Assembly: GCF_006345805.1 (NCBI RefSeq)
Contig: NC_043008.1
Span: 77,810,001-77,874,000, forward strand
DNA length: 64,000 nt
Direction of reading: 5' to 3'
Source: Octopus sinensis
Lineage: Eukaryota
The notes beneath the pieces were generated by a model. It worked only from the letters and a program-made list of their open reading frames with translations. It was not told the DNA's origin and did not search any database. Both the position numbers and the translations under genes were made by a program. Positions 1 to 59,584 of the stretch are shown here, piece after piece; the stretch's first letter is position 1, and every line of letters starts with the position of its first letter.

Positions 1-520
1 CTTGAAAAGGAAAGTGAGAGTAGAGAGGCAAGTTTTGTCTAGCGAATGTTTTAAAAAAAGATGGGTGAATGTAGCAAGAATGGCACGTATGAATGACGAA
101 GCCACCTTGAGCATAGTCCTATGAACCCAGAAATCGAAGACAGAGAGTTGCTTATTTGCAAAAAAAAAAAAAAAAAAAAAGAAATATAAAATGTGACTTC
201 ATTGACCGAGGTTACCGTGGTCTTTTCCGTAGGCTTTTCTTTCCACAGGTAAACCTCACCTGTCCTCCCCTTTACACTTCATATTGACATTTCTGTGATA
301 ACGATCCCTATTGATCAATTTTTTTTTCCTCTCCCCCCCCTTTTTTTTTTTTTTAACCCCCCCCTTTTTTTTGTCCTCTTTCTCTCCTTTTACGATCCCT
401 TTTGATCGAAACTCCCCCTTCCTTTTTTTTTTTTTTTTTTTTTTTAAACCTTCAAAAGAAAAGCTCTACCTTGTAATTTGTTCTATCTGTGTGCAGCCCT
501 GTGTGGCTAATAAAGAAACA
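1..520 (+). mobile_element. 3' end of a Tx1-like (L1-clade) LINE: ORF2 C-terminus (2-124) plus 3'UTR
   Basis: Frame from 2 reads LKRKVRVERQVLSSECFKKRWVNVARMARMN...L*, matching LKRKMRLERKVLSDSKFYERWVNCARLA of the copies at 22-34 kb. The 3'UTR ends in GCAGCCCTGTGTGGCTAATAAAGAAAC, like GTCAGCCCTTGTGGCCAATAAAAAAGAA of those copies. Confidence 0.8.
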
Positions 521-1611: not shown

Positions 1612-1615
1612 TATT

Positions 1616-2015: not shown

Positions 2016-2058
<43 letters not shown>

Positions 2059-2060
2059 AA

Positions 2061-2456
2061 GGCGGCGAGCTGGCAGAATCGTCAACATGCCGGGCGAAAT
2101 GCTTAGCGGTATTTTGTCTGCCGTTACGTTCTGAGTTCAAATTCCGCCGAGGTCGACTATGCCTTTCATCCTTTCGGGGTCGATAAATTACGTACCAGTT
2201 ACGCACTGGGGTCGATGTAATCTACTTAATCCCTTTGTCTGTCCTTGTTTGTCTCCTCTGTGTTTAGCCCCTTGTGGGTAGTAAAGAAATAGGTATTTCG
2301 TCTGTCGTTACGTTGTGAGTTCAAATTCCGTCCAGGTCGATTTTGCCTGCCATCCTTTTGGGGTCGATGAAATAACTACCAGTCGGGCACTGGGGTCAAT
2401 GTAATCGACTCATCCCCACCTCCCCCAGTAGCCCCCTTGTAGCAAAAATTTGAAAT
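2061..2456 (+). mobile_element. tRNA-derived SINE dimer (unit 1 2061-2291 with Tx1-like tail; unit 2 2292-2456 lacking the head)
   Basis: Head GGCGGCGAGCTGGCAGAATCG, B-box-like GAGTTCAAATTCC, central GCCTTTCATCCTTTCGGGGTCGATAAA. Junction AAAGAAATA|GGTATTTCG. Confidence 0.85.
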
Positions 2457-2490
2457 AATAATAATCGCTATTATGACAATTATTATTATT

Positions 2491-12667: not shown

Positions 12668-12884
12668 CTTTTCTGCTTTAGGCACAAGGCCCAAAATTTT
12701 GGGAGGAGGAGACCAGTCGATTATATCAACTCCAGTATGCAACTTGAACTTAATTTATCGACCACAAAAGGATGAAAGGCAAAGTCGACCTCGGTGGAAT
12801 TTGAACTCAGAATGTAAAGACAGATGAAATACCACTAAGCATTTTTCCCAGTGTGCTAACGATTTTGCCAGCTTGCCACCTTGC
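12668..12884 (-). mobile_element. tRNA-derived SINE (type-A tail) with 14-bp TSD
   Basis: Same body as 2061-2291. TTATCCACATAATT occurs at 12654-12667 and 12885-12898. Confidence 0.9.
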
Positions 12885-22133: not shown

Positions 22134-22462
22134 CCAACAGATATAATGAGGGCTTAGTTCGTGCGTTCGAAAACATGTCAGAGGTACTCCGCAGCAAATA
22201 TAATAATAATAATAATAATCAATTCTTTTTTATTGGCCACAAGGGCTGACACGCATGATTACATAAAGGACGAAAGGTTACAAAGGGTTTTGTCCGTTTT
22301 TGAAAAACATCGAGTAAAAACTTTATAACAACGATTATAAAACAATGAAAAACTCCCAAAAGGGGGAGACGTTTCGAAAGGTTCCTGGTGGAAAAAACCC
22401 TACAAAAGCCAACGGGAGCCTGGTCAAAAAAAGGGGTGTAGAGAGTACCCTTTTTTCTCCTT

Positions 22463-25400
22463 TTACATTACCTTTTTGAAATCACAGGCGAAACTGAGAA
22501 CTGGTCCATTTATACTGGCCAGTCTCGCACAATTTACCCACCTTTCATAAAACTTGCTATCGGACAACACTTTCCTCTCTAACCTCATCTTCCTTTTCAA
22601 GTGAAACTTGAAAAAGTTGATGAGGCCTTGACCAAAGAGGAAAGTGTCTGACTTTAGCCCTTTCAAACGAGTCCACCGCACCACCTCTTTCGCCACAGCC
22701 ACTAGGCACAAGAAAACGGCCTCGCCCTCCTTGTTAAAGGAGGTCGGCGGGGCAATCTTCACTATGGATTCGGCTGATAGTCGGATCCGTCCTACACGTG
22801 ACAGTAGCTGTTCGACATAAACCCATATTTCAGCAATACTCGGGCACTGGACGAGTGCGTGCAGAACGGTTTCGTCGTCCTGGCAACACCTCGGGCAGGC
22901 CCGGCTGACGGCACTTCCGTGCCGGTAGAGTTATCTCGAACAGGCAGAGCCCCTCGGTAGCACTGCCAGGCGAGCGACCTCTGGAAATTATCCATCGGCC
23001 CCGGCCCGAAAGTCCTCCCGAACAGACCACTCAGTTCGTCATCTTCAACGCCTAGAGTTTCCCTGAGAACGTCGTCGCATTTTTCCTCCACTAACCCTCT
23101 ATAGAACGCTAGAGTGGAGCTGTAACCGATCGCATTGCCCGCCTGACGGAGGGCGGAGAGGGCTTGACGGCACTCGAGGTGCCAAGCGCCCTTTCTCGGT
23201 CTACGTTTGATCCAGGTCTGCAGCTCCGTCAAAGAGACGAGCTGCGGAAAATCGCGTCTGACAAAAGACGACCACACCTGTTCACCGTCTAGGAAGCGCT
23301 TGAGATGCCGCAGCCTGAGCGCATGTCTGCGCAACAGCAACCACGGCATTCCAAGGCCTCCGTTCAGCGGTCGTTGACAGCAGATGGATCGCCTGACCAG
23401 TGGCACCTGACCCTTCCACAAAAAGTCGAAGAGCAGGCGTACCAGCTTGGCCAACCAGCGGTCGGGACAAGGGACGACGGTCAAGCGGTAATAGATGACG
23501 GACGCGATGTACGCATTCCCCACCTCCGCTCGACCTTCCAGGGACAGCTTTCTCTCGGCCCATTTCTTGGTGAGACGTGCCACCCTGCTCGTCACCTCTT
23601 CCCAGTTCTTATCCACCTGGAGGTCCGGACCGAACCAGACCCCGAGCAGTTTAACGGGTCCGTCTGTCCAGCGCCCTACGACGCTGTTGGACGGCATGGG
23701 CTTGCCTCTCCAGGTGCCCAGTTGCAAGCCCACAGACTTTTCCGCGTTAATCTTTGCCCCTGTCACCGCTTCGTACTGGTTTAGCGTCTCGCCAATCAGG
23801 CCAATGTGCCTGTGGCTCGACACCACCACGGTGACGTCGTCGGCATAAGCAGACACGCTGTTTCCGCCTCCTAGATCGCGCGGGATACCCCGCAAAGCCT
23901 CCAACTTGCGCAGTAATGTCTCGAGAGTCAAAATGTACAAGAGGGAGGAGAGAGGGCATCCTTGGCGGACCGAACGCGAGATGTCGAACGGTTCCGAAAG
24001 GTGACCGTTCACCCGTATCACCGAGCAGATGTTGCTGTATAAAGCAGCTATCCACCCGCGGAAGACTGGACCGAAGCCGGCTGCCTTGAGGACAGCTGCC
24101 AGGTACCGATGGTCGATCCTATCGAAGGCTTTACTCTGATCCAAGTTGATGAAAGCCCCATCCGCGCCAGCGTCGTTACCCACCCTCTCTATGATGTAGC
24201 GCATGAGATGGAGGTTGTCGTGTATCGACCTGGTCGGCACGGCGCATGTCTGCGTCTTGCCGACCAGCTTGTCCACGACAAGCGCCAATCTCTTGGCTAG
24301 CACCTTGGCCAAAATCTTCAACTCTGCATTGAGCAGAGTGATGGGCCGGAAATTCCCTATAACGTCCCCCTTGTTTGGGTCCTTCTTCAGCAAAGCCACC
24401 ACCCCTCGACAGACAAAAGCAGGAATTCTCTCGTTTTGCTGCCAGTTGCAGTAGACGTTTGCCAACAGGCCCGCAAACAAGTCTGGCATTGAAAAGTAAA
24501 GCTCGTAGGGCAGACCATCCAAACCCGGCGATCTACCTCTCGTGCAACTCTTCATCGCTTCTCCCACTTCCCAGGCAGATATCGGTCCTTCGCAGCACTC
24601 TGCCTCGCTGTCCGAGAGTTGCGGTAGGCCGTCCAGGTACACACCGAAGTCTGCACCGTTGTCCGTTCCACCGCTCGTCCCAAACAGTTGAGTAAAGTGC
24701 CGCTGAAGCACCGTACACATCTGCTTCGGTTGGGTAACCTCGCGCCCGTTCTGGTCCACCAAAGACCGAATGGTTGCTCTGTTGCCTCGCTTCGCCTCCG
24801 CCACGCGGGCCCATCGAGCGGCTCTAGTCCCCTCCCCGCTTAGCGAACGTGCCTTAGCTCTGACAACGCAGCCTTCGTGTTTGGCGTCGAAGTGTTGGTC
24901 GAGGGCCAACCTTGCCGCCAACACGTCGGTCGCGATGCCAGTGTCAAGAGCCTCGTCTAGTTTCTTAACTAAATCCCGCTCTCTCTTCCTACGTTCAATA
25001 GCTAGAGTCTTACTATACCTAATCGACTCTACTCTAATTGCTCTCTTGAGGGCAAACCACCAGTTGTTGTTGATGATTGCCCCCGTGAGCGCCCACTTAA
25101 CTAGTAAACTAATCCGGTCTCTGTAAGCTTTGCACGCCGTTAACGACGCGTTCAGCTTCCAGTAGCCGGGTCCCTGTCTATGTAGCCTATCTAAGTCGAC
25201 CGTACAGATCACTAATTTGTGGTCCGTATATTCGACTAGGTGGAATTGTGGACACCCTACGCTGTCCTTATCCGCTGGCCTACAAAACACTCTATCTAAG
25301 TACGATCTAGACGACCCGATGCGATTGGTCCAAGTCCACATTGGCACATTCGGGTTGTCTAGTCGAAACCTGTCGGACAGCTGAAAGCGGCCGAGTAGGT

Positions 25401-25910
25401 TGGCGAGGCTCTTGCACCCTCCCCCTCTCCTATCAGACGCTCCCCTGCCCACCCGATCGAAACGTTCGTCTAAGACAGCGTTCCAATCCCCAACTAGCAC
25501 TAGAGTGCGTGACGTTCCCAGAAAACTTCCAGACGTTTGAAATAATCCGACTGCCCTGCTCCTGTCGGAGCGTAGGCAGCCAGCAGTCTGAAAGCACCGC
25601 CGTCACTACCGTCCACGTCGAGGACCACCAACTTACCTTCCGGATCCAAGAAGACTGTCCTTATTTTCAAGTCCAGGCCCTTCCGAAACAACACCGCAGT
25701 ACCACCACCGCCCGCTCCCGGCCGACACGGAGATAGAAATATCTCGTATCCCCCGAAAAGGGCTGCGAGTTCCTGCGTGTCGGAGAGCCTGGTTTCACTG
25801 ATGGCTGCTACATCCACATCATGAAACCTCAGGTCGTTTAACAGGTGACCCTGTTTCCAAGGTGACCCGAGGCCTCTCACATTCAAGCAACCGATTCTAA
25901 GATTTGCCAT
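22463..25910 (-). CDS. ORF2 (APE endonuclease + RT + C-terminal zinc knuckle), split by single-base frameshifts near 25520 and 22930
   Basis: MANLRIGCLNVRGL, AAISET, VGDWNA, YLDRVF, TDHK; SPGLDG, FRPITLLN, DQSKAFD, RQGCPLS, YADDVT; CPRCCQDDETVLHALVQC. Confidence 0.93.
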
Positions 25911-25947
25911 GTTTCAAAAGTTAGGAAAAAAAAAGAGAAAAAAGGCT

Positions 25948-27797
25948 CTACTTACTGTTGTTGGTGGTGGGGGTGGCTCCCTTGTGCTTTTGCACGGGTG
26001 CTTCCACTATATTTTTGTAAAGTTTCTTAGAGAAACTTTTCCCTAACGATCCCACATCATTAGGGAATATTTGTTTAACTTCGTTGTATGTTGTTTTGTT
26101 TATTTTAATTGTGAGAATGTGTGCTGGTGGTGTGTTTTGTGTTGGTATAACGAAATCCGTTATATTTGTACTTGTTTTTTCTTTCAAGTACTCAACCAGT
26201 TCCTGGTTTCTTGTATTTATTGCTGTAATTGTGTCTGTGTGGGTTTGTGTCTGTGGCAGTGGCAATGGCAGTAGTGGTGTCGAAAGTGTTGTTGTTGTTT
26301 GTTGTTGTGAGTGTGTGTTGTTGTTGTTGTTGTTGTTGATGTTGGGAAGCACTATTTGTTCGTGCTTCCCCTGTATGTCTTTTTGTTTTCTCCTCCTTTT
26401 CTTTTTTGGAGGCACTGTGCTCCATTCTCCTTTGTTGGAATCAGAGCTCGCACAATCCGAGTACTCTTCATCCGGCAAAGGAAGGATGAGGGGTCTGCTT
26501 CAGCAGCAGGACGAAAAGTTGTTGGTTCCGCCGGTATCGGTGGTGCCGCTGCTCCTGTTGCTGTTGATGGTGCCCGCGTTGGTGAGCTCTCACCTTCTCT
26601 TCTTGCTGCTGTCGACCTTCTAGGTACTGGTGTTGGTGTTGGTTTGGTGTGATTGTTGTTGTTGGAGGTGGTGTTGTTCGTCTTGGTGTTGGTGATGGTG
26701 TTGGTGGTGTGGCAGCCTTTGGTTTTCGTGCTGTTTCTGTTGTTTCTGTTTTTGTTGTTGTTTGTTGTTGTTGCTGCTCTTGCTGTTTCCTCCATCTCTT
26801 TTCTTTTTTTTTGAATGGGCAGTCCCTCTTCAGGTGGCTTTCGCTACTGCAGAGGAAACATTTTGGCTTTCGCCCCTCTACAGTAACGTTTAGCCTGGTC
26901 CCATTTAGTAAGATGACAAAGTCAGGTATGGCATTGATGTTTTCCTGCTGTATCTGTACCAGCAGTTCAATACCCATACCTGACCAGTTCTTTTCTCTTA
27001 CCCTCCGAACATTTAGAATAGTGGCAGTGTCCTCTATACCATAGAGGATAGCCGCCACTAGCCATGAGATATTCAGTTCAGGGGGTATTGTATTTATTGT
27101 TATTTTTTGGACCTTACGCCCGAGGTACATCGGAACGAGGAACAAATGTTCATTTTGCAAGGGCGAAATGGCATGCGCCCTTGCTTGCTCCTCTTGGTGG
27201 AAGCGAACCTCCACGGTTCCAAATCGCTTCCTTCTTGTCACATAGCTCTTTGGCCCCAAATGGGCTTCAGAGCCATTTCTAACTGTTGGGGTGTGCGTTA
27301 AGCAATCTTTTAGTTTTCTTTTCGAAAACTTTATAGAAAATTGTTTTTTTGTTGGTCTCTTGTATGAGTTGTTGAGGTGTGTTGAGGAAAACACTGTTTC
27401 CCTCTTTTCTCAACAAATCTTTTGCCATTTTAATATCTTCCATCGTAATTTGTATCCCTTCCGAAATTTGCTTCGCAGCTGAAGCAAAACCCTTGGAATT
27501 TTCTTCAATTTTTTTTTCTTTGTTTATTTCTCTCTTATTCATATCATTCCCTTCCTCCCCCTTCGGTACTATAACATTAGTTGAAGGTAGAGGGGGGAAA
27601 TCTAAAATGACGTCGCAAGAGACAACGTCTTTTTTGTTTTTATTTGGAACGCTTGCTTTTCAGACACATTTTCATTGTAATGTTTACTTCGCGCTTTTAC
27701 GGCTTGAAATTCGTTCGTAACCTCTGACGAAATTTTTTCTTCTTGTGGAGGGTGGTGTTGCAAGGAGGGAAGAGCCAGCAGCTCTTTTTAAAGCCAT
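25948..27797 (-). CDS. ORF1 (gag-like, zinc knuckle, Pro/Thr/Gln-rich tail), frameshifted
   Basis: GRKPKCFLCSSESHLKRDC and EWSTVPPKKKRRRK; pieces spread over several frames. Confidence 0.8.
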
Positions 27798-28318
27798 TTT
27801 GGAAATGTGTGTGTGCAAAATAATGTGAATGTCAATAATATAAACAGTAATTTTACCCCGAAAGGGGTAAAATTTTGCCTAGCCAACTGGCTCCGCAAGA
27901 AGTTAGTCGGCTTGGCCACAAAAATATTCAAAAATATTAACGCTTATCAACAAATTTCCAATGAAATTGTCACAAAACTCACGGAGCTTCCGTAGACACG
28001 TCCATCCGCGTTGGAAGAAATAATAATAATAATCAATTCTTTTTTATTGGCCACAAGGGCTGACACGCATGATTACATAAAGGGACAAGACAGGACGAAA
28101 GGTTACAAAGGGTTTTGCCGTTTTTTTTTTAAAAACATCGAGTAAAAATCTTTATAACAACTTATAAAATTCAACAATGAAAAACTCCCAAAAGGGGGAG
28201 ACGTCTCGAAAGGTTCCTGGTGGAAAAAACCCTACAAAAGCCAACGGGAGCCTGGTCAAAAAAAGGGGGTGTAGAGAGTCCCCTTTCTTCTCCTTTTACA
28301 TTACCTTTTTCTTTGAAA

Positions 28319-31300
28319 TCACAGGCGAAACCTGAGAACTGGTCCATTTATACAGGCCAGTCTCGCACAATTCACCCACCTTTCATAAAACTTGCTATCG
28401 GACAGCACTTTCCTCTCTAACCTCATCTTCCTTTTCAAGTGAAACTTGAAAAAGTTGATGAGGCCTTGACCAAAGAGGAAAGTGTCTGACTTTAGCCCTT
28501 TCAAACGAGTCCACCACACAACTTCTTTCGCCACAGCCACAAGGCACAAGAAAACGGCCTCGCCCTCCTTGTTAAAGGAGGTCGGCGGGGCAATCTTCAC
28601 TATGGATTCGGCCGATAGTCGGATCCGTCCTATACGTGACAGTAGCTGTTCGACATAAACCCATATTTCAGCAATACTCGGGCACTGAACGAGTGCGTGC
28701 AGAACGGTTTCGTCGTCCTGGCAACACCTCGGGCAGGCCGGCTGACGGCACTTCCGTGCCGGTAGAGTTTATCTCGAACAGGCAGAGCCCCTCGGTAGCA
28801 CTGCCAGGCGAGAGACCTCTGGAAATTATCCATCGGCCCCGGCCCGAAAGTCCTCCCGAACAGACCGCTCAGTTCGTCGTCTTCAACGCCTAGAGTTTCC
28901 CCGAGAACGTCGTCGCATTTTTCCTCCACTAACCCTCTATAGAACGCTAGAGTGGAGCTGTAACCGACCGCATTGCCCGCCTGGTGGAGGGCGGAGAGGG
29001 CTTGACGGCACTCGAGGTGCCAAGCGCCCTTTCTCGGTCTACGTTTGATCCAGGTCTGCAGCTCCGTCAAAGAGACGAGCTGCGGAAAATCGCGTCTGAC
29101 AAAAGACGACCACACCTGTTCACCGTCTAGGAAGCGTTTGAGATGCCGCAGCCTGAGCGCATGTCTGCGCAACAGCAACCACGGCATTCCAAGGCCTCCG
29201 TTCAGCGGTCGTTGACAGCAGATGGATCGCCTGACCAGTGGCACCTGACCCTTCCACAAAAAGTCGAAGAGCAGGCGTACCAGCTTGGCCAACCAGCGGT
29301 CGGGACAAGGGACGACGGTCAAGCGGTAATAGATGACGGATGCGATGTACGCATTCGCCACCTCCTCTCGACCTTTCAGGGACAGCTTCCTCTCGGCCCA
29401 TTTCTGGGTGAGACGTGCCACCCTGCTCGTCACCTCTTCCCAGTTTTTATCCACCTGGAGGTCCGGACCGAACCAGACCCCGAGCAGTTTAACGGGTCCG
29501 TCTGTCCAGCGCCCTACGACGCTGTTGGACGGCATGGGCTTGCCTCTCCAGGTGCCCAGTTGCAAGCCCACAGACTTTTCCGCGTTAATCTTTGCCCCTG
29601 TCACCGCTTCGTACTGGTTTAGCGTCTCGCCAATCAGGCCAATGTGCCTGTGGCTCGACACCACCACGGTGACGTCGTCGGCATAAGCAGACACGCTGTT
29701 TCCGCCTACTAGATCGCGCGGGATGGCCCTCAAAGTCTCCCTCAAAGCCTCCAACTTGCACAGTAATGGCTCGAGAGTCAAAATGTACAAGAGGGAGGAG
29801 AGAGGGCATCCTTGGCGGACCGAACGCGAGATGTCGAACGGTTCCGAAAGGTGACCGTTCACCCGTATCACCGAGCAGATGTTGCTGTATAAAGCAGCGA
29901 TCCACCCGCGGATGACTGGACCGAAGCCGGCTGCCTTGAGGACAGCTGCCAGGTACCGATGGTCGACCCTATCGAAGGCTTTACTCTGATCCAAGTTGAT
30001 CAAAGCCCCACCCGCGCCAGCGTCGTTACCCACCCTCTCTATGATGTAGCGCATGAGATGGAGGTTGTCGTGTATCGACCTGGTCGGCACGGCGCATGTC
30101 TGCGTCCGCCGACCAGCTTGTCCACGACAAGCACCAATCTCTTGGCTAGCACCTTGGCCAAAATCTTCAACTCTGCATTGAGCAGAGTGATGGGCCGGAA
30201 ATTCCCTATAACGTCCCCCTTGTTTGGGTCCTTCTTTAGCAAGCCACCACCCCTCGACAGACAAAGCAGGAATTCTCCCGTTTTGCTGCCAGTTGCAGTA
30301 GACGTTTGCCAACAGGTCCGCAACAAGTCTGGCATTGAAAAGTAAAGCTCGTAGGGCAGACCATCCAAACCCGGCGATCTACCTCTCGTGCAACTCTTCA
30401 TCGCTTCCTGTACTTCCCAGGCAGATATCGGTCCTTCGCAGCACTCTGCCTCGCTGTCCGAGAGTTGCGGCAGTCCGTCCAGGTACACACCGAAGTCTGT
30501 ACCGTTGGTGTCCGTTCCACCGCTCGTCCCAAACAGTTGAGCAAAGTGCCGCTGAAGCACCGTACACATCTGCTTCGGTTGGGTAACCTCGCGCCCGTTC
30601 TGGTCCACCAAAGACCGAATGGTTGCTCTGTTGCCTCGCTTCGCCTCCGCCACGGGCCCATCGAGCGGCTCTAGTCCCCTCCCCGCTTAGCGAACGTGCC
30701 TTAGCTCTGACAACGCAGCCTTCGTGTTTGGCGTCGAAGTGTTGGTCGAGGGCCAACCTTGCCGCCAACACGGTCGGTCGCGATGCCAGTGTCAAGAGCC
30801 TCGTCTAGTTTTTAACTAAATCCCGCTCTCTCTTCCTACGTTCAATAGCTAGAGTCTTACTATACCTAATCGACTCTACTCTAATTGCTCTCTTGAGGGC
30901 AAACCACCAGTTGTTGTTGATGATTGCCCCCGTGAGCGCCCGCTAACTAGTAAACTAATCCGGTCTCTGTAAGCTTTGCACGCCGTTAACGACGCGTTCA
31001 GCTTCCAGTAGCCGGGTCCCTGTCTATGTAGCCTATCTAAGTCGACCGTACAGATCACTAATTTGTGGTCCGTATATTCGACTAGGTGGAATTGTGGACA
31101 CCCTACGCTGTCCTTATCAGCTGGCCTACAAAACACTCTATCTAAGTACGATCTAGACGACCCGATGCGGTTTGTCCAAGTCCACATTGGCACATTCGGG
31201 TTGTCTAGTCGAAACCTGTCGGACAGCTGAAAGCGGCCGAGTAGGTTGGCGAGGCTCTTGCACCCTCCCCCTCTCCTATCAGACGCTCCCCTGCCCACCC

Positions 31301-31757
31301 GATCGAAACGTTCGTCTAAGACAGCGTTCCAATCCCCAACTAGTACTAGAGTGCGTGACGTTCCCAGGAAAACTTCCAGACGTTTGAAATAATCCGACTG
31401 CCCTGCTCCTGTCGGAGCGTAGGCAGCCAGCAGTCTGAAAGCACCGCCGTCACTACCGTCCACGTCGAGGACCACCAACTTACCTTCCGGATCCAAGAAG
31501 ACTGTCCTTATTTTCAGGTCCAGGCCCTTCCGAAACAACACCGCAGTACCCCACACCGCCCGCTCCCGGCCGACACGGAGATAGAAATATCTCGTATCCG
31601 CCGAAAAGGGCTGCGAGTTCCTGCGGGTCGGAGAGCCTGGTTTCACTGATGGCTGCTACATCCACATCATGAAACCTCAGGTCGTTTAACAGTGACCCTG
31701 TTTCCAAGGTGACCCGAGGCCTCTCACATTCAAGCAACCGATTCTAAGATTTGCCAT
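28319..31757 (-). CDS. ORF2 of copy 2 (APE-RT), multiple single-base frameshifts
   Basis: Near-identical to copy 1 ORF2; frames 28630-30312, 30039-30653 and 30876-31646 tile the protein. Confidence 0.9.
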
Positions 31758-31797
31758 GTTTCAAAAGTTACGGGAAAAAAAAAGGAGAAAAAAGGCT

Positions 31798-32619
31798 CTA
31801 CTTACTGTTGTTGGTGGTGGGGGTGGCTCCCTTGTGCTTTTGCACGGGTGCTTCAATAATATTTTGTAAAGTTTCTGAGAGAAACTTTTCCCTAACGATC
31901 CCACATCGTTAGGGAATATTTGTTTTATTTCGTTGTAAACTGTTTTGTTTATTTTAATTGTGAGAATGTGTGCTGGTGGTGTGTTGTGTGTAGGTATTAT
32001 GAAATCTGTAATGTTTGTGCTTGTTTTGTTTTTCAAATACTCAACCAGTTCCTGGTTTCTTGTATTCACTGCTGTAATCGTGTCTGTAATTGTGTCTGTG
32101 TTGTTTGTGTGTCTGTGGTAGTGGCAGTAGTGGTGTCGAAAGTGTTGTTGTTGTTGTTGTTGTTGTTGTGGAGTGTGTGTTGTTGTTGTTGTTGTTGATG
32201 TTGGGAAGTACTGTTTGTCGTGCTTCCCCTGTAAATCTTTTTGTTTTTTCCTCCTTTTCTTTTTTGGAGGTACTATGTTCCATTCTCCTTTGTTGGAATC
32301 AGAGCTCGCACAATCCGAGATCTCTTCATCCGGCAAAGGAATGGTTGAGGAGTCTGCTTCAGTAGCAGGACGAAAAGTTTTTGGTTCCGCCGGTATCGGT
32401 GGTGCCGCTGCTCCTGTTACTGTTGATGTCGCTGCTGTCGACCTTCGAGGTACTGGTGTCGGTGTTGGTTTGCTGGTGGTTGTCGGTGTTGGTTTGGTGG
32501 TGGTTGTTGTTGTTGGAGGTGGTGTTGTTCGTCTTGGTGCTGGTGTTGGTGTTGGTGTTGGTGGTGTGGCAGCCTTTGGTGTTTCTTGCTGTTTTTGTTG
32601 TTTCTGTTGTTGTTGCTTG

Positions 32620-32653
<34 letters not shown>

Positions 32654-33672
32654 GCTGCTGCCTCTTGCTGAACGCCTCCATCCTCTTTTTGTGAATGGGA
32701 CAGTCCCTCTTTAAGTGGCTTTCGCTGCTGCAGAGAAAACATTTTGGCTTTCGCCCCTCCACAGCAACGTTTAGCCTGGTGCCGTCCGGCAAACTTACGA
32801 AATCAGGGATTTTACTTATATTCTCTTGCTGAATTTGCGCAAGAAGCAGCACTCCCATCCCCAACCAGTTTTTCGCCCTCACTCTCCTGACATCTAGAAT
32901 GGTGGTAGTGTCCTCTATATCATAGAGGACAGCTGCCACCAGCCATGACATATTTAGCTCAGGGGGGACGAGGTCGATTTTTATTTTTGTTACTCTTCGC
33001 CCGAGGTGGGTCGGAATTAGTAACAAATTCTCAGTTTGCAAGGGCGAAATGGCGTTCGCCCTTGCAAGCTCCTCTGTTGGGAAGCGAACCTCCACGGTTC
33101 CAAAACGCTTCCCCTTGGTTACGTAGCTCTTTTGGGCCCAAATGGGCTTTAGAGCTATCTCCAACTGTTGGTGTGGCATTTGTTATTCTTTTTAGTTTTC
33201 TGTCGAAAACTTTGTAAATTATTGTTTGCTTGTTGGTGCTTTCAATCACCTCTTGTGGAGTATTGAGGAAGATACCATTGTCATCCTTCCTTAACAATTC
33301 CTTCGCTCTTTTCACATCTTCTAGAGTTATCTTAACTTCCTCCGAAATTTGCTTCGCAGCAGAAGCAAAATTGTTGGAAGTTTTTTCTTTTATCTCCGTG
33401 TCAATGTTGTGATGATTTTTGTATTTGTTTTTTTTTTCCTCCTCCTTCCGTACCAAAGCATTAGGTGAAGGCAGAGGGGGAAATCGAGAATTACGTCGAA
33501 CGCGACGTCCTGGCTTGCATTCTCCTTTTGAACGGAGCTCGTGCTCTGCGGTTCGGAAGGAGAATCTTTGTTGCCTTTTAAGGCGTGAAGTGGGTGTTTT
33601 ACGAGTTGTGTGTGTTTGCGGAGGGAGTGTATCTTGAAGGAAGGAACAGCCAACTGTTCGCTTCATAGCCAT
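31798..33672 (-). CDS. ORF1 of copy 2, frameshifted
   Basis: MAMKRTVG...FASAAKQISEEV...GTVEVRF...GRKPKCFLCSSESHLKRDC; poly-Gln and Pro/Thr tracts. Confidence 0.82.
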
Positions 33673-33904
33673 GTTTTTTTTTGTTGTAATATTCAAAATG
33701 TTGAAAAATGTCAAATGTTCAAAATTTTAAAACGTAATTTCACACCCCGAATGGGCAAAATTTCGCCCACCGACGAGCTCCGCAAGAAGCCGGTCGGTTT
33801 GGCTACAAAAATATTAAAAAATATTCAAACCTAACAATAGATTTCCAATGAAATTGGTGTCAAATTCACGGAGCTGATTCACGTACGTCCATCGGCGTCG
33901 GAAG

Positions 33905-34011
<107 letters not shown>

Positions 34012-34540
34012 CTCTCCATGGCTTCTTATCTTAACTGATTGGAAGTGTTATCATGTACATTGTTTTGTCTTGGTATAAAAGATGGGCTACAGCAAATATT
34101 CTGCTCAATACCACAGATTTGCTTGTCAGTTGTTTGACCTTAACCAGTTGAGCATGTCCTTAGTGGCTGACGATATGTGCATCTCTGATCACGAGCAGAA
34201 GTAGTGGGGGAGCATCATAGCCATGTGTTGAGAGGGATTCTTTGGGGTTTGAATAGTTCACCTCTGGAAACATGGGTGGTTCTTTCAACATCCTTAAACA
34301 ACCCTTATTCAGGGACCGTTTGAGCGGGATGGGCTACTCAACCTGAAGAAAATTCTAACTGGGCCCCACCTGCAAGGTCATGTGCTGTTTATCTTAATAT
34401 GAGATCACCATGTCGCGCACATATGGTTGTGATGCATGTGCCTGGTGTACCTTTATCAGACGGGTAGTCATGATGGGTATATTGGGCTTCGTATATTTTA
34501 CCCCAGTGTCACTTTGATGGCATGAACTGCTCTCTCACTC
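34012..34540 (+). mobile_element. ~550-bp repeat, slightly 5'-truncated
   Basis: Lacks the first ~25 nt and ends CTCTCTCACTC-AAT. Confidence 0.88.
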
Positions 34541-34575
<35 letters not shown>

Positions 34576-35063: not shown

Positions 35064-37339
<2,276 letters not shown>

Positions 37340-37980: not shown

Positions 37981-38178
37981 AACCCTTTATACTAAACTCA
38001 CATGGCCTGAGGTTTGTGTGGAGGGGCCAGTCGATTACATCGACCCCAGTACTCCACTGGTACTTAATTTATCAACTCTGAAAGGATGAAAAGCAAAGTT
38101 GACCTCAACGGAATTTGAACTCGGAACGTAGCAACGAGCGAAATACCGCTAAGCATTATATCCAGCGAGCTAACTCAT
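37981..38178 (-). mobile_element. tRNA-derived SINE (type-A tail), degenerate
   Basis: GGAATTTGAACTC and AAAGGATGAAAAGC blocks, as in the other copies. Confidence 0.78.
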
Positions 38179-41155: not shown

Positions 41156-41228
<73 letters not shown>

Positions 41229-41257
41229 TTAATAATAATAATAATAATAATAATAAT

Positions 41258-41806
41258 GCCCTGATGCAGTACCATACAGTGGCTTTCGTGGCTTCTGATC
41301 TTAACAGATTGGAAGTGTTATCATGTACATTGTTTTGTCTTGGTATAAAAGATGGGCTACAGCAAATATTCTGCTCAATACCACAGATTTGTTTGTCAGA
41401 TGTTTGACCGTAACCAATTAGCCATGTCCTTTAGTGGCTGACGATATGTGCATCTCTGACCACGAGCATAAGTAGTGGGGGAGTATCATAGCCGTGTGTT
41501 GAAAGGAAATCTTAGAGATTTGGATAATTCACCTTTGGAAACATGGATGGTTCTTTCAACATCCTTAAACAATTCTTATTCAGGGACCTTTTAATGGGGA
41601 TGGGCTATTCGACCAGAAGAAAATTCTACCGAGCCCCACCTGCAAAGGCATGCGCTGTTTATGTTGATATGAGATCACCATGTCGAGCACATTTGGTTGT
41701 GATGCATGTGCCTAGTGTACCCTTATCAGACAGGAAGTCATAATGGGTATACTGGGCTTCGTATATTTTACCCCAGTGTCACTTTGATAGCATGCACTGC
41801 TCTCTC
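41258..41806 (+). mobile_element. ~550-bp repeat, full length
   Basis: Same termini, between AAT tracts. Confidence 0.9.
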
Positions 41807-41825
41807 AATAATAATAATAATAGTA

Positions 41826-42388
41826 ACCTTTTCTACTCTAGGTACAAGGCCCAAAATATTTGGAGAGGGGCCAGTCGATTAGACCTCAGTGCGCAACTGG
41901 TACTTAATTTATCGACCCCCGAAACGATGAAAGGCTAAATCAACTTCGGCGGAATTTGAACTCAGAACGTAAATACCTATTTCTTTACTACTCACAAGGG
42001 CTAAACAGAGAGGACAAACAAGGACAGACAAACGGATTAAGTCGATTATATCAACAACAGTGCGTAACTGGTACTTATTTAATAGACTCCGAAAGGATGA
42101 AAGGTAAAGTCGACCTCGGCGGAATTTGAACTCAGAACGTAGCGGCAGACGAAATACCTATTTCTTTATTACCCACAAGGGGCTAAACACAGAGGGGACA
42201 AACAAGGACAGACATAGGTATTAAGTCGATTACATCGACCCCAGTGCGTAACTGGTACTTAATTTATCGACCCCGAAAGGATGAAAGGCAAAGTCGACCT
42301 CGGCGGAATTTGAACTCACAACGTAACGCAGACGAAATACCGCTAAGCATTTCGCCCGGCGTGTTAACGATTCTGCCAGCTCGCCGCC
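41826..42388 (-). mobile_element. tRNA-derived SINE trimer (42388-42159, 42158-41978, 41977-41826)
   Basis: One head, two Tx1-like tails and one type-A tail. Both internal junctions read AAAGAAATA|GGTATTT on the sense strand. Confidence 0.9.
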
Positions 42389-42389
<1 letters not shown>

Positions 42390-42451
<62 letters not shown>

Positions 42452-42454
42452 TAA

Positions 42455-42485
<31 letters not shown>

Positions 42486-42522
42486 AAGAAGAAGAAGAAG
42501 AAGAAGAAGAAGAAGAAGAAGA
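42390..42522. repeat. (AAT)n then (AAG)n microsatellite
   Basis: Direct reading. Confidence 0.98.
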
Positions 42523-45500
42523 ATTTTTCCCAGTTGAGATACGCCAACTAACCACAAGTGTTATTAAAAAAGTTCTTTGTTTTAGTTTTGTAACAAGAAA
42601 AAAGACAGGAACCTGATCGTGTAACAATGTCTATCAAAGATAGAGTTCCATTCTACAATATAATGGTTAAATGTGAGTCATATTTGAACTTTGAAGACAG
42701 TCAGCAATTAATTAGAGCTAATACAGTTTACTTGAATGAAGCGGTAACTTAAACATTCGCATAATAAAATTACTAGATGCCACTGGTGAAAAGGTAGAGA
42801 CAAAAAAATCTTTTCATATTTCGGCGATCGGTAAACGTTTTGTGAAATTTTGAGCTGACAATCTAAATGAGGGGGAAAGTTGACAAATATTCAATAGAAC
42901 TAGAATTATAACTGCCTTCTACTGCGACAGGGAAGCTTGAATATCGAATATTTCAGCTAAGAATTATAAGAAATCGCCTATTAACTTGATATATCATACG
43001 ACCTAAACAAAGTAACCCGTGTATGAACAGCAGAAGATGAAAATAATAAGATAAAGTAAGAATATTGCGATTATAGCAGCCCTCTACCTATTTGTGACCA
43101 TAGGGTAGATCTTTTCGAAAGATATTTCTGGGTGTTTATTCAGTTGACATTGTCTCTATTAATAGTGACGATGAATTTCTCTATCGAATACTTTCAGATA
43201 TTTAACAACGAATTATGATGAGCGGAGAAGGTGAAGTAGAGAGTGAAAACTATTTTTAAAAAGAAGAATAGTTTCTACTATATACTAGAGCAAATCATGA
43301 ATACCAACGCTTATATATAGCTAGCTGTAAATCATTAGTAAAGAAAATTAAGTGTTAAGCCCCCACCCCCGGAGAACAGTAAGAACAAATAACAGAAATT
43401 TCTCCAAGATTCTAGGAAATAGTTTCCAATTATTTGAAGAAATATCTGGACTCTTAAATTGAATGTTTAAAGCAGAAAAATCTTATAAAATGTGTTTGAC
43501 ATATGAAAAGAGTGAGATGTTTAATGTTTAGAGGTTATTAGAACAGATAGGTAGGGAATGTTTGACCCCTTATATAGCTAAAAACCTTCTTTAAATTGTG
43601 ACCATCACCGAAAAGAATCACAGCGATTGATATTGCCATAGGACAAGCATTAGTAAAAAAACGTCAAATTCAGTTTGATTTGGTTTCGATTCTAATCCAT
43701 TCTCAATGCTTTTTCAGATCTTAAAATATTTCCTAGAATGAATGAAACTAGTGAATTCTAAAACGCGAAGTCTCTTTTGACACCTGGAAAACAATTTAAA
43801 GGTTTTGTTGATTGCAAAAATCAAACAAAAGAAGTTTAAATCAGCATTGATTTAATCACAAATTATAATTTGTATCCAAAACAAGACTTAGTCATTTCAG
43901 CTTCTCAGAAAAATAAGGGTTCCACCGGTGACCTTCACATTTCTTTAAAAAATCATGAACTTTGTATGTTCGTCCTTTTATGTAACGACAAGGAGCGATT
44001 TGATGAAATTCGGTTACTATTCTTCATAGATTGAGTGCCTGTGCGACGGATCTTTTATAGGTCCGGGCTCCTTGATTGCTTAACAACTGTGCCTTTATAT
44101 CTTTATTGCATGGTTATATTTGATGCACCGTCATATCAACGGGGAGCAATCCAGATAATTTAGTTTAATATTTCATAATAAAGAACTCTTGCTTATTTTC
44201 CTTATCCTGTCCTTCGCTTTAGGAGCTGAACAACACCAAGTACAATTTCTCTCGGCCAACTTTTGCCAAGATTAAAAACAAGTATATCAATAGAAGGACT
44301 TCGTTTTCAAAATCTGGATAGACCTTTGTTACAACTTTTATGAAGCAGAGGAAGTTTACAAGCAGAAAGCGCAAAGTCATAAGTTCAATAATTCTGTTTC
44401 ACCCAGTAAAGCAAAAATACCATTCATCACATGATTAAGCTTCGATTAGATAGTATCCCGAAAAAATACTAAATTTTCAGTTTGTTCGTGGTATTATCGT
44501 GATGGTACTGTTTTAACTGTAAATGATAGAAATTATGAGTGTCTTATAGAATTTTTGGTAGTCAAGTTCTAGCTAGGATTTTTAACTGTAACTTATAAAT
44601 ATTGCGTCTCTTGTAATATTTCAAAATATTGCATGAAATGCTTTTACTAATTATATTGGACAGAGGGATAACAGAAACTGTAAATAAGCGGGTAAAATCA
44701 CATATCGGTTGACTTGTCTTTCATCCACCTGAGTTTTATTGAATTAATGCCAATCGTGTATACTTGGGTTAGTATCGTCGATTATTTGACTTGTGTCGAT
44801 GCTAAAAATCATTAAAAGACATTGTGGTTTGATATCCAAGATTGCTAAGATACAACACTTCGCAAATTTCTAGTCGATGGCCAAACTATTCAATGTTTAA
44901 TAAGTTATACAAGAGTCAAAAACTAAATGGAGATTGCTAACATGAAAAACTAATACAATATGCGCAATAAAAATTATAAGATAAGACTGATAAATAATTC
45001 TGTCAATCTACATATTTTGGATGCAATCAAAGAAACAGAGGCTTTTCAAAATACATACACACATAAACATAAGCATACATACATGCCATGTTTCCTTACA
45101 CATAGATGCACACATGTCTTACACAAATATATTTAGGACACATGTATTGCTCGTAGATCACTACATAAATACATTTAGATATGAATGTAAATATACAGAA
45201 TTGTGTCTCTATTTCATTATACTGCAATAATTAGGTATTCGAACATATTTTTCTATTCCCAGGAAGCTCTACACAGCTATAACTACACACACACTCACAC
45301 ACAGGCATGCGAGCATACATACTTATAAATATTCAGATTTAGCTCATGCACATACGCATATGTATATATCTATATATATATATATGTGTGTGTGTGTGTA
45401 TATGTATGTAATGTATGTATGTATGCATGTTTGTATGTATGTATGAATGAATGTATGTATGTATATAGTTCTTCACTTCTTTTGTTTGTTTTAGCCATGA

Positions 45501-45917: not shown

Positions 45918-47183
45918 TGAAGTGTGTTCCAGAGGCTTTGAAACTTCTTTTTAGGAGAGATAGTTATAACTATCTTAGATTGTTGGGATTTTAGTATATC
46001 ATTCCGATACGCCGAATAAAGTGACCTGCCAAGTTTTTTGTTCCAGATTGAGGAGACGGCTGTAACACATCCTACTAAACACGGCTTGTCACAGCAATAA
46101 AGTTTTAGTTTAAACTAGGTAAAAATGGTACAAAAATTTATGAAATGCTCCTGATTACTTATGGATTGATTAACTCGTATAACCCGAAAATGTTTTGTGC
46201 TGGCACAAGACGTTCAAGGACGGTAGAGGAGATGAGGGACGAGGAGAGATGTGGAGGGGAGAGGGACGTAAGAACATCAGAGATGGTCAAGAGAATTCGC
46301 AATTTTCTGTGTGAAAACCTTTGCGTGTCTATAAAGACAATAAGTTTACAGTTTGGAGTTGGCATGGCAGCTGCATTTAGAAGTACAGTACTTAGAAGAT
46401 CTGAACATGTTAACAATTTGTGAAAAGGTTATTTCCAGGGTGCTCAGTGACGAACTGAAGGAAAGACACGTTGGTGACAGCAGGGAGACGGTTGAGTTTA
46501 TTACTTTCAATCCATGAAAACTCGAGTCTCTGGTGTCCTGTGTCGAAAGCTGAATCTATTGCTTTTATCCAGAGACCAAGAGATAGAGTGACTAATGAAA
46601 GTATCCTGGTTTCCCCAAACCAAAACAGGGCTAGGCAAAACAAGTCCACTGGGAAGCTAGTGTTGAACCCCTTTTTCGGCAGCAAGAGAATCATCTACGT
46701 CCACTGTGTTTCCTCTGGCAAGACGGTCAACGAAGAGTTCTTTGTAGAGGTTTTAAGGGTAATCAGAAAGAAATTTCATCGCAAAAGACCAGAACTCTTT
46801 CATTTAGGTCGATGGCACGTACACCAGGATCTAACACTAGTTCACAATTCCATCCTGGTAACCAACTACGTGACAGAGGTAAACATCAAAACTGTCATTC
46901 ACGCTCCCTACAGTCCAGACTTTGCTCCCTGTGACTTTTGGTTCTTTCCCAAGCTGAAGAATAACCTCAAGAGCAGATGTTTTGAAGATATTGAAAAATT
47001 TAAGGCAGTTGCGACAAGGCTCCTCGACACCTGCATTCTGGAAGATTTCCATGGGAGTTTCACAAAGTGGCTAGAGCACAACAAAATGTGCATTGAAGTC
47101 AGAAGATCCTACTTTGAGTTTTGTACGTCTTTGAAATTCATATCTCTCTTGAAAAAGTCTCAAAACTTCTGGAACGCACTTTG
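45918..47183 (+). mobile_element. Older mariner transposon with degenerate transposase
   Basis: Imperfect TIRs (TGAAGTGTGTTCCAGAGGCTTTGAAACTT vs CAAAGTGCGTTCCAGAAGTTTTGAGACTT) flanked by TA; RKRPELF..RWHVHQD and HAPYSPDFAPCDFWFFPKLK. Confidence 0.9.
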
Positions 47184-49072
47184 TATATGTCACTTCGTGA
47201 TAAAATAGAATATTCCAAAACATCTTTGAACTAATAATCTCTTCATTCAATACACCTATTTTATGTTTCTAGACACGAGGAATCCGCTTGAGGCTGAAGT
47301 CATCCAGAAATCTGGCGTCGGCATCAAGGCACGAATGTATTTGTCATTGTGAGATAACTCTCGTTATCAGTGGTGTAGACTAAGAATCGAGACGAGTAAA
47401 TAGGAGGATGAAGATATTTTCTGGTTTATTAACGCCAACGTATGGAAATGATTCTTTCTTACTTCACCAGAGGTGATAAATATCTCATAGGAAATTAAAG
47501 AAAAATTTGATATCTTTGTTCACAAAAGTATAAGGAAATCATCTGACCCAAGAAAATGCTGCTAAGAAAGAATTTGGTGTCAACAAAATCAAAGCTGGCA
47601 TAACGAGTCACACTGGTACCTTTGAAGTAGATGGTAGTTAGTTAATTTCAAGACCTATGCATACGATCCCCAAGAGAATGTTCCGTTGCTTCTTAATAGA
47701 GACGAAAGTAGTCAGATGCTATGCGAAGAGTATATTGAATGCGGTTAATATAAAAGTTAGTTTGTGAGCACCAGCCAAAAAGTGAAACAATGCCAATGTA
47801 TAAGCTACATTGGAGATTACGATGGGATATGACAAATCATGAGTTACACATATTACGTTTAAACAACCAATATTGTCAGATTTTCTGCAGTAGATAAAAC
47901 CAAATGTTTTCACTAGTGGATGAAAGTTGATAGGATCATCATGTTAACACTGATTAAACTGATAAAGGAAGGTGACCGAACACACAGGAAGGATCACTGG
48001 AAAAATTGTTATATTTAATGTGACGTCCAAAGTGCATCTATTTAAAAAGTATTCCTGACGTAGGATGGTATCTGATTTGTAAAAAAAAAAAAAGTAGCAA
48101 AAAAGCGGCAAATTTGTCCTTGACTCAGTGCCTTTGTAAGGGACATTTCACGTTTGCAGAGTAGGATGTGGTATCAATCCACAGTGATGTGACAACGTCT
48201 CATCAATCCATTTAAAAATGGCTACTATCAGAATGACTGTGGAAACATTCCTCCTACCACTAGACTTGCACCCCAGGCCATTGTAGAGTCGGCCAGATAA
48301 CTGTGTAAAGCGTATTGCACAACTCAGTGATATTATTATAGGAAACTCAACTTAACTTTAAAAAAAGATTTGCTTTATGTTGAAATAACTGCAATAATGA
48401 TGCGGACTTTATTGTTGAAAATGATACTCATGATACTGAAGATCTGTAAAAGTATATTCCAAAACATTGTACGACCTAATAGGTTCTGTCTAAAGAATCT
48501 ATAGTTCAGTCTTATAACTAAAAAAAGAAAAGAAAACAGCTATCTTGCTTTATAACCCCACTCGTGTAATTTCAAAGGTTATGTAATACTCACAAAAATA
48601 AAGACAATGATTTTCAATTAACTTTGTTACATTTCAATAAACCTAATCACATATTTGTACATTAAAATAAAAGAGATAAACTGACATGAAGAAAAAGAAA
48701 TTACGGTATTCAAGATCAGCTTTGCACTAACAGAAGTTTTTTTCTTGCTTTAACACATCAGCACTTCTTCTCATTGTAAAAATCAATTTCTCATTTTCTC
48801 TTTTAAAATCAAACACATGCACAAACACACACACTCACTCATTCACTCACACTCACGTACACACATTCACACACACAAATGCATATAATTAAATGACAAA
48901 GGAAATGAAATTTACATGAACTTTATATGCACACATACATATATATATATATACACATACATATATATATTTTTCGAGAAAATGATTTTTTTTTTCGAAA
49001 AGAATTTTATCCTCACATTTGATATAAATTTAAGCGTTCACTTCCGAACTAACTAACTAACTAACTCACTCT

Positions 49073-49683
49073 CTCCAGCAAGAGTGGGAAGAAGGGAGAA
49101 AAAAAAGAAAAAAAAAGAAAAAAGAAAACAGTACGAAACCCCAGCCCACCCCAACACCACCCGTACCCTCTGAGTCCCATCCTTCCCTGCAAACAGCGAT
49201 TCCACCCACTCCCCGCCTACAAGCAAACCAAAAACAAATAATAATGCAGACACACAGAACGAACAAAGTCCCAGGCCCTATTTTTTATGTGTTGCGAGGA
49301 AGAAGGACACCCAGAACTCAAAAAGAATAATACATAAAGATTTATGGCACGAACGTGAAGATGGGAGTTGCGCGGTGTTGAAAGATGAATTTATGGACAC
49401 AGTGGTGATGTTGTGTGAGGAAGAGGGTATAAAAGTGATGAAAGTGACAATTCAGGATGAAGAGATAGAGAAGTATGAAAGGAAAACGAAGAGTGTGATA
49501 GGAAAGGAAGGACTTGTGATTGGAAATGGGTGATGAAGGACAGGTAAGTGGTGCTGGCGGATGCATCACTTTCATTTCATCATTTTCATTTTAAAATTCA
49601 TTTCTCATAATTTTAAATTGTTCTATGTCCCCAATGTATTGTGATGTTTTTTCTGTGTCGCCCCTGTGGGTAATAAAGAAATA
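49073..49683 (+). mobile_element. 5'-truncated retroposon with Tx1-type 3' end and 11-bp TSD; ORF1-tail-like content (HAL1-like candidate)
   Basis: TAACTCACTCT at 49062-49072 and 49684-49694. Ends TGTGTCGCCCCTGTGGGTAATAAAGAAATA. EWEEGRKKRKKKK followed by a Pro/Thr-rich stretch; no ORF2 motifs. Confidence 0.6.
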
Positions 49684-56060: not shown

Positions 56061-56258
56061 GGGTTTTATTTTTTTACGCATTTCATTTTTGCTTCCTTTG
56101 CTTTTTATCACCGAACAGGGTCGGAAGCAGTGTTGAACAATGATATAACTTTATAATGCTTGTCCTGAGTGACCAATAGTCGCTCATGCATTTGTTACCT
56201 AGATATCAAAGGAAATAACAACAACAATAATATTGATAATAATAATAACAACAACAGC

Positions 56259-56323
<65 letters not shown>

Positions 56324-56327
56324 TAAT

Positions 56328-58859: not shown

Positions 58860-58961
<102 letters not shown>

Positions 58962-59513: not shown

Positions 59514-59514
<1 letters not shown>
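58962..59514 (-). mobile_element. ~550-bp repeat, full length
   Basis: Same termini, between ATT tracts. Confidence 0.9.

Positions 59515-59584
<70 letters not shown>

Follow-up and report, generated by a model that had tools for sequence, protein, structure and literature searches.

In Octopus sinensis, one SINE head on the minus strand at 41828-42388 is followed by three bodies instead of one, and the question that this locus raises is how separate SINE units came to be joined at exactly the same base. More than a tenth of the octopus genome consists of SINEs, and the majority of SINE families are unclassified (PMC13282606). The window, i.e., the whole stretch of 64,000 nucleotides that was analyzed, had previously been given a sequence-only reading, which attributed the joint to a Tx1-type enzyme cutting the SINE head. 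The composite multi-unit organization, in which the joint is fixed at a hairpin apex, is real and unusual, and searches of the literature on octopus SINE arrays, together with a full-text search for the box-B string, did not find the structure described. As an enzyme mechanism for this joint, a self-targeting Tx1 cut is attractive and is not supported. The explanation tentatively preferred here is that composite SINEs are assembled at the reverse-transcription step, by template switching or strand transfer, and that the arrays integrate whole through their last tail.

Anatomy of the SINE arrays

The trimer, read directly on the minus strand, consists of one head and three body units (Table 1), and a second array in the window, a dimer, is located on the plus strand at 2061-2456. 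All units of the trimer start with GGTATTT and carry the box-B-like motif GAGTTCAAATTCC and a shared core, 117 nt in length and ending in ...GTAATCGACT. In U1 and U2 of the trimer the core is followed by tail B (...GTCTGTCCTTGTTTGTCC..TTAGCCCCTTGTGGGTAATAAAGAAATA), of which the terminal sequence in U1 is ...GGGTAATAAAGAAATA; the 'AGTAAAG' subtype of this tail is common to U2 and the first unit of the dimer. Tail A of U3 is the tail that is also found in the TSD-flanked monomer at 12880-12668, and U3 is followed on its 3' side by GTTAC(TAT)5 and then by the reverse complement of repeat X. A period of 184 bp was found at the trimer by TRF (2.0 copies, 89% matches, score 587), and this is the sole long-period repeat in the window.

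This anatomy is as the sequence-only reading had described it, with one head and then units joined at GGTATTT, except that the trimer is on the minus strand and that U3 is without the 11 nt right after GGTATTT. The type-A tail that had been assigned to the last unit is present in U3 of the trimer but not in the dimer, whose last tail is of a third type. Similarly, the head that had been called tRNA-like shows box-A-like (TGGCAGAATCG) and box-B-like motifs when read by eye only, and neither ARAGORN nor the Rfam tRNA model found a tRNA in it, even at E<=10.

At 2101-2116 (plus strand), the dimer head has GGTATTTTG in place of GGTATTTCG; as a result of this CpG-to-TpG change, a T4 run that could terminate Pol III transcription coincides precisely with the position of the joint. 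Tail A also holds a T4 run (AATATTTTGGG / AAAATTTTGGG; 41851-41862 and 12691-12700, both on the minus strand) upstream of the LINE-like terminal motif, and this run would terminate Pol III transcripts 5' of the presumed RT recognition site. Immediately 5' of the trimer head, a pure (TAA)23 tract runs directly into a perfect (AAG)22 tract (42390-42523).

Table 1. Location and characteristics of SINE, LINE and repeat X features in the window
Feature	Position	Strand	Characteristics
Trimer, SINE head	42342..42388	-	Begins GGCGGCGAGCTGG; box-A-like motif; last bases GCTTAGC; read directly
Trimer, 12-bp hairpin	42330..42357	-	GGGCGAAAUGCU / loop UAGC / GGUAUUUCGUCU; RNA fold
Trimer, U1	42159..42341	-	GGTATTT start, box B GAGTTCAAATTCC, shared core, tail B ending AATAAAGAAATA
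Trimer, U2	41978..42158	-	Layout as U1; tail B of 'AGTAAAG' subtype
Trimer, U3	41828..41977	-	GGTATTT, 11-nt deletion, core, tail A ...GGGCCTTGTACCTAGAGTAGAAAAG
Repeat X copy at trimer	41159..41826	+	Trimer lies antisense in its (AAT)n tail
Dimer, head and first unit	2061..2291	+	Head 2061-2107; tail-B unit 2108-2291
Dimer, second unit	2292..2456	+	Other SINE subfamily (AAATAACTACCAGTCGGGCAC); third tail type
Full-length monomer, tail A	12668..12880	-	18-bp TSD AATTATGTGGATAARCAA at 12881-12898 and 12650-12667
5'-truncated monomer	38021..38157	-	Starts near head position 22; in (AAT)n tail of repeat X copy
LINE a	22220..28018	-	L1/Tx1 type (APE + RT); 3' end ...CAGCCCTTGTGGCCAATAAAAAAGAATTG, then (ATT)6
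LINE b	28034..33906	-	89.5% identical to LINE a; head-to-tail with it via (ATT)5; preceded by ~(ATT)35
Related LINE 3' end	1..520	+	Cut by window edge; tail ...GCCCTGTGTGGCTAATAAAGAAAC, then unrelated DNA (ATATCTATC...)
Free 3' end most like tail B	49630..49683	+	21/22 of last bases; then unrelated DNA (TAACTCAC...)

The fixed joint and the head hairpin

All three internal joints of the two arrays have the sequence AAAGAAATA|GGTATTT. The 16-mer AAAGAAATAGGTATTT occurs exactly three times in the window, at 42152-42167 (minus), 41971-41986 (minus) and 2283-2298 (plus), where 0.15 occurrences are expected by chance, in agreement with the three junctions that had been reported. All three SINE-borne B tails are thus followed by GGTATTT, even though the three joints may not be independent events. 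The head site GCTTAGCGGTATTTC, with at most one mismatch, was found in four heads in the window.

When the first 99 nt were folded as RNA, they formed a rod centered on a 12-bp hairpin (MFE -38.7 kcal/mol, z = -2.6). The repeat unit begins at 42341, the first base past the tetraloop of this hairpin, and the joint is therefore the 3' edge of the loop; as read from the sequence, the joint itself re-forms a small stem, GAAAU-AGGU-AUUUC. Its position at the hairpin apex suggests that the joint is a structural rather than a sequence landmark. The internal joints are without (ATT)n and the microsatellite is found solely outside the arrays. Cleavage at tRNA position 37/38, the intron site, was also considered as an origin of the joint and was rejected, as neither a cloverleaf nor a 7-nt anticodon loop could be drawn and the tRNA model gave no match.

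SINE copies in the window and in Argonauta

Eight box-B-bearing units were found in the window, at five loci, and the box-B-like motif is present in all eight. A free B-module monomer is not among these eight units, and the window also lacks a monomer whose truncation point is exactly GGTATTT. In the monomer at 38 kb, the GCTTAGCGGTATTTC site is unoccupied. Dispersal is seen in the five window loci, and target site duplications are seen in the 18-bp TSD of the monomer at 12.8 kb and in a clear 10-bp TSD (TTTCAAGGAA) on one copy in Argonauta; both arrays are flanked by (ATT)n on both sides and their TSDs are therefore unreadable. A 3' tail in common with a partner LINE, which also characterizes SINEs, is represented by tail B. 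Upstream of the dimer, at 1897-2058 (plus strand), there is a 5'-truncated SINE fragment (~1897-1968) that belongs to the 'AAATAAC' subfamily; its ~(ATT)29 tail leads directly into the dimer head, showing that SINEs stack through microsatellites too.

In 22 kb from Argonauta, a SINE with another head has the same core and tail B; its seven copies are ordinary monomers that are followed by unrelated DNA. At 1380-3400 and 13520-15400 of the Argonauta hians sequence, the SINE head is unrelated (GGTGGGTGAGTCGATTTCG..., box B GCGTTCGAATC) and the core and tail B are the same. The presence of this core and tail behind an unrelated head suggests that core plus tail is an old module across octopod lineages and that the head has been replaced. 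A tandem of two full SINEs in Argonauta was examined as a possible case of end-to-end template jumping, which was rejected because the second copy is flanked on both sides by AG(G/A)(C/T)CAGCAC and thus represents an adjacent insertion.

Searches for the joint, the head site and the core in viral and genome collections gave no match, and a tail-B pattern gave only four matches in one metagenome scan, which were bacterial and due to chance. No copy of the SINE was present in the closest contigs bearing these transposable elements (GCA_024449705.1 and JGI 3300045642; DNA only 76-79% identical), and the SINE was also absent from ENA contigs that carry tandems of a 44%-identical LINE. Viral contigs gave no loci for the LINE protein, and spurious open reading frames through the SINE gave no candidate.

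Tail B and the LINEs

Tail B was found to align with the 3' ends of the LINEs in the window, of a JGI LINE and of a LINE in Argonauta, with the common motif GCCCTTGTGG..AATAAAGAAAT. The description of this tail as Tx1-like is borne out to the extent that these are LINE 3' ends of the L1 superfamily, and on this alignment tail B is LINE-derived. LINEs a and b encode Exo_endo_phos and RVT_1 domains (Pfam), with zf-RVT (PF13966) found in close homologues, and the best PDB match is human L1 ORF2p (1e-42; R2, 1e-19). The APE and RT domains, with L1 ORF2p as the nearest solved relative, place both LINEs in the L1/Tx1 group; they may belong to the Tx1 clade itself, to which a distant match to 'Transposon TX1...' (27% identity) and a report of L1-Tx1 in octopus are the only pointers. 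L1-Tx1 families have been reported in octopus (PMC13282606). The best matches of the LINE ORF2 are in Argonauta hians (68%) and in an NCBI assembly (71%), in keeping with an octopod-like window.

Other mobile element sequences were also found in the window. Related LINE RT fragments, with 52-61% amino acid identity to LINE a, are located at 2601-3017 and 3803-4141 (plus strand), directly beside the cluster that includes the dimer and repeat X copy X8. A second, unrelated LINE family (RVT_1) is represented by broken copies at 35521-36974 and 56233-57300 (plus strand) as well as at 4.2-7.5 kb and 62-63.3 kb; the top database match of this family is at 80% (GCA_024449705.1), and many invertebrates and fish have relatives of it. 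A degenerate mariner/DDE transposase remnant is present at 46471-47208 (plus strand).

Microsatellite context of the SINEs and LINEs

LINEs a and b, the two full-length copies in the window, form a tandem and each have (ATT)n on both sides; in the JGI relative, too, the 3' end runs into (ATT)n. A boundary with (ATT)n is likewise seen for the trimer, the dimer, the monomers at 38 kb and 16.9 kb and the 5'-truncated fragment at ~1897-1968, even though the approximately twenty (AAT)n/(ATT)n tracts represent only ~2.9% of the window. What the members of this LINE/SINE group visibly have in common as a target or tail is therefore (ATT)n and not the SINE head, in agreement with the behavior of Tx1 relatives that are specific for microsatellites (PMC4494074). 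With both ends of the two full-length copies in one type of microsatellite, the LINE resembles Kibi, Koshi and Dong. The (ATT)5-joined tandem suggests that the LINE targets microsatellites and that its own tail repeat can serve as an insertion site. In an ENA contig, distant relatives of the LINE are also arranged in tandem, with a 6.6-kb period.

Three SINE loci are associated with repeat X, as the dimer and the monomer at 38 kb lie, like the trimer, antisense in the tails of X copies. Repeat X is ~670 bp long and has eight copies in the window, each ending in ...GCACTGCTCTCTCACTC(AAT)n, a repeat that is complementary to the one in the tails of the LINEs and SINEs. The other copies are located at 33906-34557, 17541-18023 and 37322-~37990 and, on the minus strand, at 58945-59583, 990-1615, 1604-1895 and 2470-2603. 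Both array-bearing copies are without 'ACTC' beside the tail.

Divergence between units

In the shared core, the first units of the trimer and the dimer are 96.1% identical, and the trimer head plus U1 is 94.9% identical to the dimer head plus first unit. By comparison, identity is 89.3% between U1 and U2, 80.8% between U2 and U3 and 83.5% between the two units of the dimer; the downstream units are thus 80-89% identical and have three different tails (B, A and the third type). Relative to a leave-one-out majority, U1 has 2 differences in 103 positions, U2 has 11 in 103 and U3 has 12 in 104. Over both arrays, the head-proximal units show 2 and 4 differences of 103, the downstream units 11, 12 and 14, and the old monomers 12 and 13. 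Our own binomial calculation gave P ~0.01-0.02 per array for the older-looking downstream units. The heads of the two arrays differ at 2 of 49 positions, while the trimer head and the head of the old monomer at 12.8 kb differ at 9 of 47, and the array heads therefore belong to the young module. Counts of CpG decay were uninformative as a measure of age, with few CpGs lost in any unit.

The combination of old downstream units and young first units looks like a late addition of the B module to old resident copies. Each downstream unit may, however, be a separate subfamily that was sampled once, and its differences may then be subfamily-diagnostic. Some of these differences do recur elsewhere, such as AAATAAC in the fragment at 1.9 kb and TTGATATAAT in the monomer at 12.8 kb.

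Apart from a 4-nt deletion that they have in common, the repeat X flanks of the two arrays resemble each other no more than they resemble other X copies; the flanks are therefore not close paralogues and the two loci are independent, and a segmental duplication of one array was rejected on these grounds. The arrays were also rejected as copies of a single multimeric master, because their downstream units and tails differ. Since neighboring units are 81-89% identical and first units 96% identical, and since the arrays differ in their downstream units and tails, the proposal of recurrent, position-specific joining, as opposed to unequal recombination of one master, has held up. On this comparison of units, joining must have taken place more than once; whether counted by copy or by master gene, different SINE bodies received the B module at their GGTATTT on no fewer than two or three occasions.

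How the joint may have been made

Template switching by reverse transcriptase is the accepted model for module exchange among mollusc SINEs (PMC4758252), and switching by LINE reverse transcriptase has been invoked for U6-L1 and snRNA-Alu chimeras (PMC4494074). We infer, tentatively, that the units of the octopus arrays were joined on RNA or cDNA in a similar manner and that the arrays then moved as units. The young B module would consist of head, core and LINE-type tail B, without microsatellite. Nascent cDNA of another SINE would reach GGTATTT, which starts at the first base past the loop of the head hairpin, and there the LINE reverse transcriptase would switch onto the 3' end of a B-module RNA and copy it through to the head, leaving the B module on the 5' end of the cDNA. 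An RNA that derives from an array and terminates in ...AAAUAGGUAUUU may serve as the acceptor, and the overlap of 7 nt could then act like the R repeat of a retrovirus. The finished array would integrate as a whole, via the tail of the final unit, into (AAT)n/(ATT)n, where this LINE/SINE group ordinarily inserts. Since the 117-nt core is common to all units, later switches in this core, either out of register or between subfamilies, could add units or swap the 3' unit, with the joint inherited unchanged. More speculatively, the CpG-to-TpG change by which GGTATTTCG acquires a T4 Pol III stop could yield B RNAs ending in GGUAUUU, which would provide a landing pad.

Several features are consistent with joining at reverse transcription. 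The arrays have a complete 5' module, a 5'-truncated 3' part and a tail repeat only on the outside or 3' side, and a complete 5' copy joined to a truncated 3' copy is the signature described for template-switch chimeras (PMC4494074). The young heads and the 96.1% identity of the first units fit a B module that was copied whole. In U3, GGTATTT is retained on tail B and the next 11 nt are absent, as an acceptor RNA ending in GGUAUUU would give. The (ATT)n setting of both arrays, which is also that of other SINE copies and of both LINEs, and the position of the joint at the hairpin apex count for such joining, as do the LINE ends of the tail family in the window and the LINE and seven SINE tails in Argonauta, which are away from GGTATTT and give no sign of a nuclease specificity for the head. 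On the other hand, the RNA ends that this model needs are hypothetical, as the eight units include neither a free B monomer nor a monomer truncated at GGTATTT. The older appearance of the downstream units, unless their differences are subfamily-diagnostic, fits later addition better than assembly in one step. Moreover, template-switch chimeras are normally rare and here three of eight units are joined, and the model needs one founding joint that it leaves unexplained.

Targeting of the head itself appears unlikely. According to this explanation, resident heads are opened at GCTTAGC^GGTATTT, either by a LINE enzyme of Tx1 type or by a structure-specific nick in the palindromic head. The RNA of a tail-B SINE would then be reverse-transcribed at this opening, with head homology resolving the 5' end, such that arrays grow stepwise on the head-proximal side. 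The B module would then be a tail-less SINE that integrates only at one base in the head hairpin of SINEs of its own superfamily, by means of either a Tx1-type endonuclease dedicated to this site or a structure-specific nick in the palindrome, and that parasitizes its relatives, replaces their heads and lets arrays grow from the 5' side, a life cycle that we consider doubtful. Targeting could account for the joining of three kinds of downstream unit at the same base, for head-proximal units that are the least diverged in both arrays (2 and 4 as compared to 11-14 differences of 103) and for two B sub-lineages within one array. A 3' joint without a tail is also typical of site-specific LINEs, and Tx1 elements are known to evolve repeat targets that SINEs share with their partners (PMC4494074). 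Free B monomers number zero, and all three SINE-borne B tails abut GGTATTT, which an inherited joint would give equally well.

A target-specific LINE is, however, expected at the target itself, with more than 20% of flanks as the criterion (PMC4494074). No LINE 3' end of this tail family was found at GGTATTT among four in the window and one in Argonauta, a very small sample. Two of the four window ends (LINEs a and b) abut (ATT)n and two (1-520 and 49630-49683) abut unrelated DNA, as does the LINE 3' end in Argonauta. The statement that Tx1-like tails are followed by the target therefore applies to three of the seven tails in the window, all of them SINE-borne, while the other four lie elsewhere, and the suggestion of a Tx1 enzyme that cuts the SINE head, with a LINE family at the same target, finds no support in these ends. 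The full LINEs here are instead associated with (ATT)n. Furthermore, both array heads are as young as the first units (2/49 as compared to 9/47), whereas plain annealing to a resident head would retain the old one; resolution of the 5' end by homology to the resident head, at least in its simplest version, does not predict such young heads, even though strand segregation could rescue about half of such events. No insertion with a non-homologous 5' joint was seen, and the source RNAs would need a defined ...GAAAUA end, yet the genomic copies continue into another unit.

It is improbable that several multimeric masters, i.e., a head-B-C dimer family and a head-B-B-A trimer family, were amplified as such, with the three joints derived from one old accident and nothing recurrent now. 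Such masters would be in line with the ~900 SINE families of octopus genomes, most of which are unclassified (PMC13282606), with the recurrence of some 'private' downstream differences in other copies and with the location of the arrays at ordinary (ATT)n targets. At least two masters with a near-identical first module and unrelated downstream units would nevertheless be needed, such that joining or exchange would still have taken place more than once, and no second copy of either array is present in the window.

Homology-directed DNA repair, which we regard as quite improbable, would start from breakage of a resident head, perhaps within the palindrome, and repair from an array elsewhere, with (ATT)n plus head as the left homology and the second unit of the donor as the right homology, thereby copying in head, U1 and tail B. 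This would account for a young head alongside old downstream units, for an invariant joint that is inherited and for the (ATT)n upstream of every array. The right homology would, however, extend over only ~117 nt, with 80-89% identity, and would thus be a poor substrate for recombination. Dispersed short repeats rarely undergo ectopic conversion, and the founding joint would be unexplained. Local tandem duplication at each locus, by unequal crossing-over or replication slippage, could produce the 184-bp TRF period and is very unlikely indeed, since neighboring units (89.3%, 80.8% and 83.5% identity) are less alike than first units at different loci (96.1%) and the dimer units belong to different subfamilies with different tails.

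Comparison with known systems

Rule-based fusion of a single module to many SINE bodies, always at one base, as assembly at reverse transcription would provide, would explain part of the SINE diversity of octopus and would also record the template choice of a reverse transcriptase in readable form. If targeted integration were true, this would be the first SINE known to home into the promoter region of its own family, and its site would represent a natural, short and programmable site of retro-insertion. Either way, annotation pipelines that split or merge such arrays miscount SINE families and their ages.

In the R2 and R1 elements, through a co-transcribed target sequence, and in retroviral strong-stop transfer, through the R repeat, a short overlap between template and acceptor fixes the joint. 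By comparison, the octopus RNA ending in GGUAUUU, which would provide such an overlap, is hypothetical. In the colugo CYN elements, the Twin SINE of Culex and dimeric Alu, each unit is a whole small-RNA-like monomer. The octopus arrays differ from these in that they have one head only, the repeat starts from the middle of the head at the hairpin apex and each internal unit has a complete LINE-derived tail; they resemble such dimeric and trimeric tRNA-derived SINEs (cited in PMC4758252) in being head-to-tail, multi-unit SINEs with a single 3' tail in transposition.

The template-switch chimeras U6-L1 and snRNA-Alu, as well as 5' additions in SINEU (PMC4494074), are similar to the octopus arrays in their complete 5' RNA copy, their 5'-truncated 3' retroposon and a tail repeat that is on the 3' side only. 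While the truncation points of the U6-L1 and snRNA-Alu chimeras are variable and these chimeras are rare, the octopus joint is identical in 3/3 cases and involves three of eight units. Target-specific Tx1 LINEs include Kibi and Koshi, which are found in (TC)n/(TTC)n, Keno, which is found in U2 genes, and Tx1-Mar, the target of which is shared by SINEU (PMC4494074). In contrast to these pairs, the common target in the octopus window is (ATT)n and no LINE copy is located at GCTTAGC^GGTATTT. Like Kibi, Koshi, Keno and Tx1-Mar, the octopus LINE is of L1/Tx1 type, and it occupies one microsatellite together with its SINEs and additionally forms head-to-tail LINE tandems.
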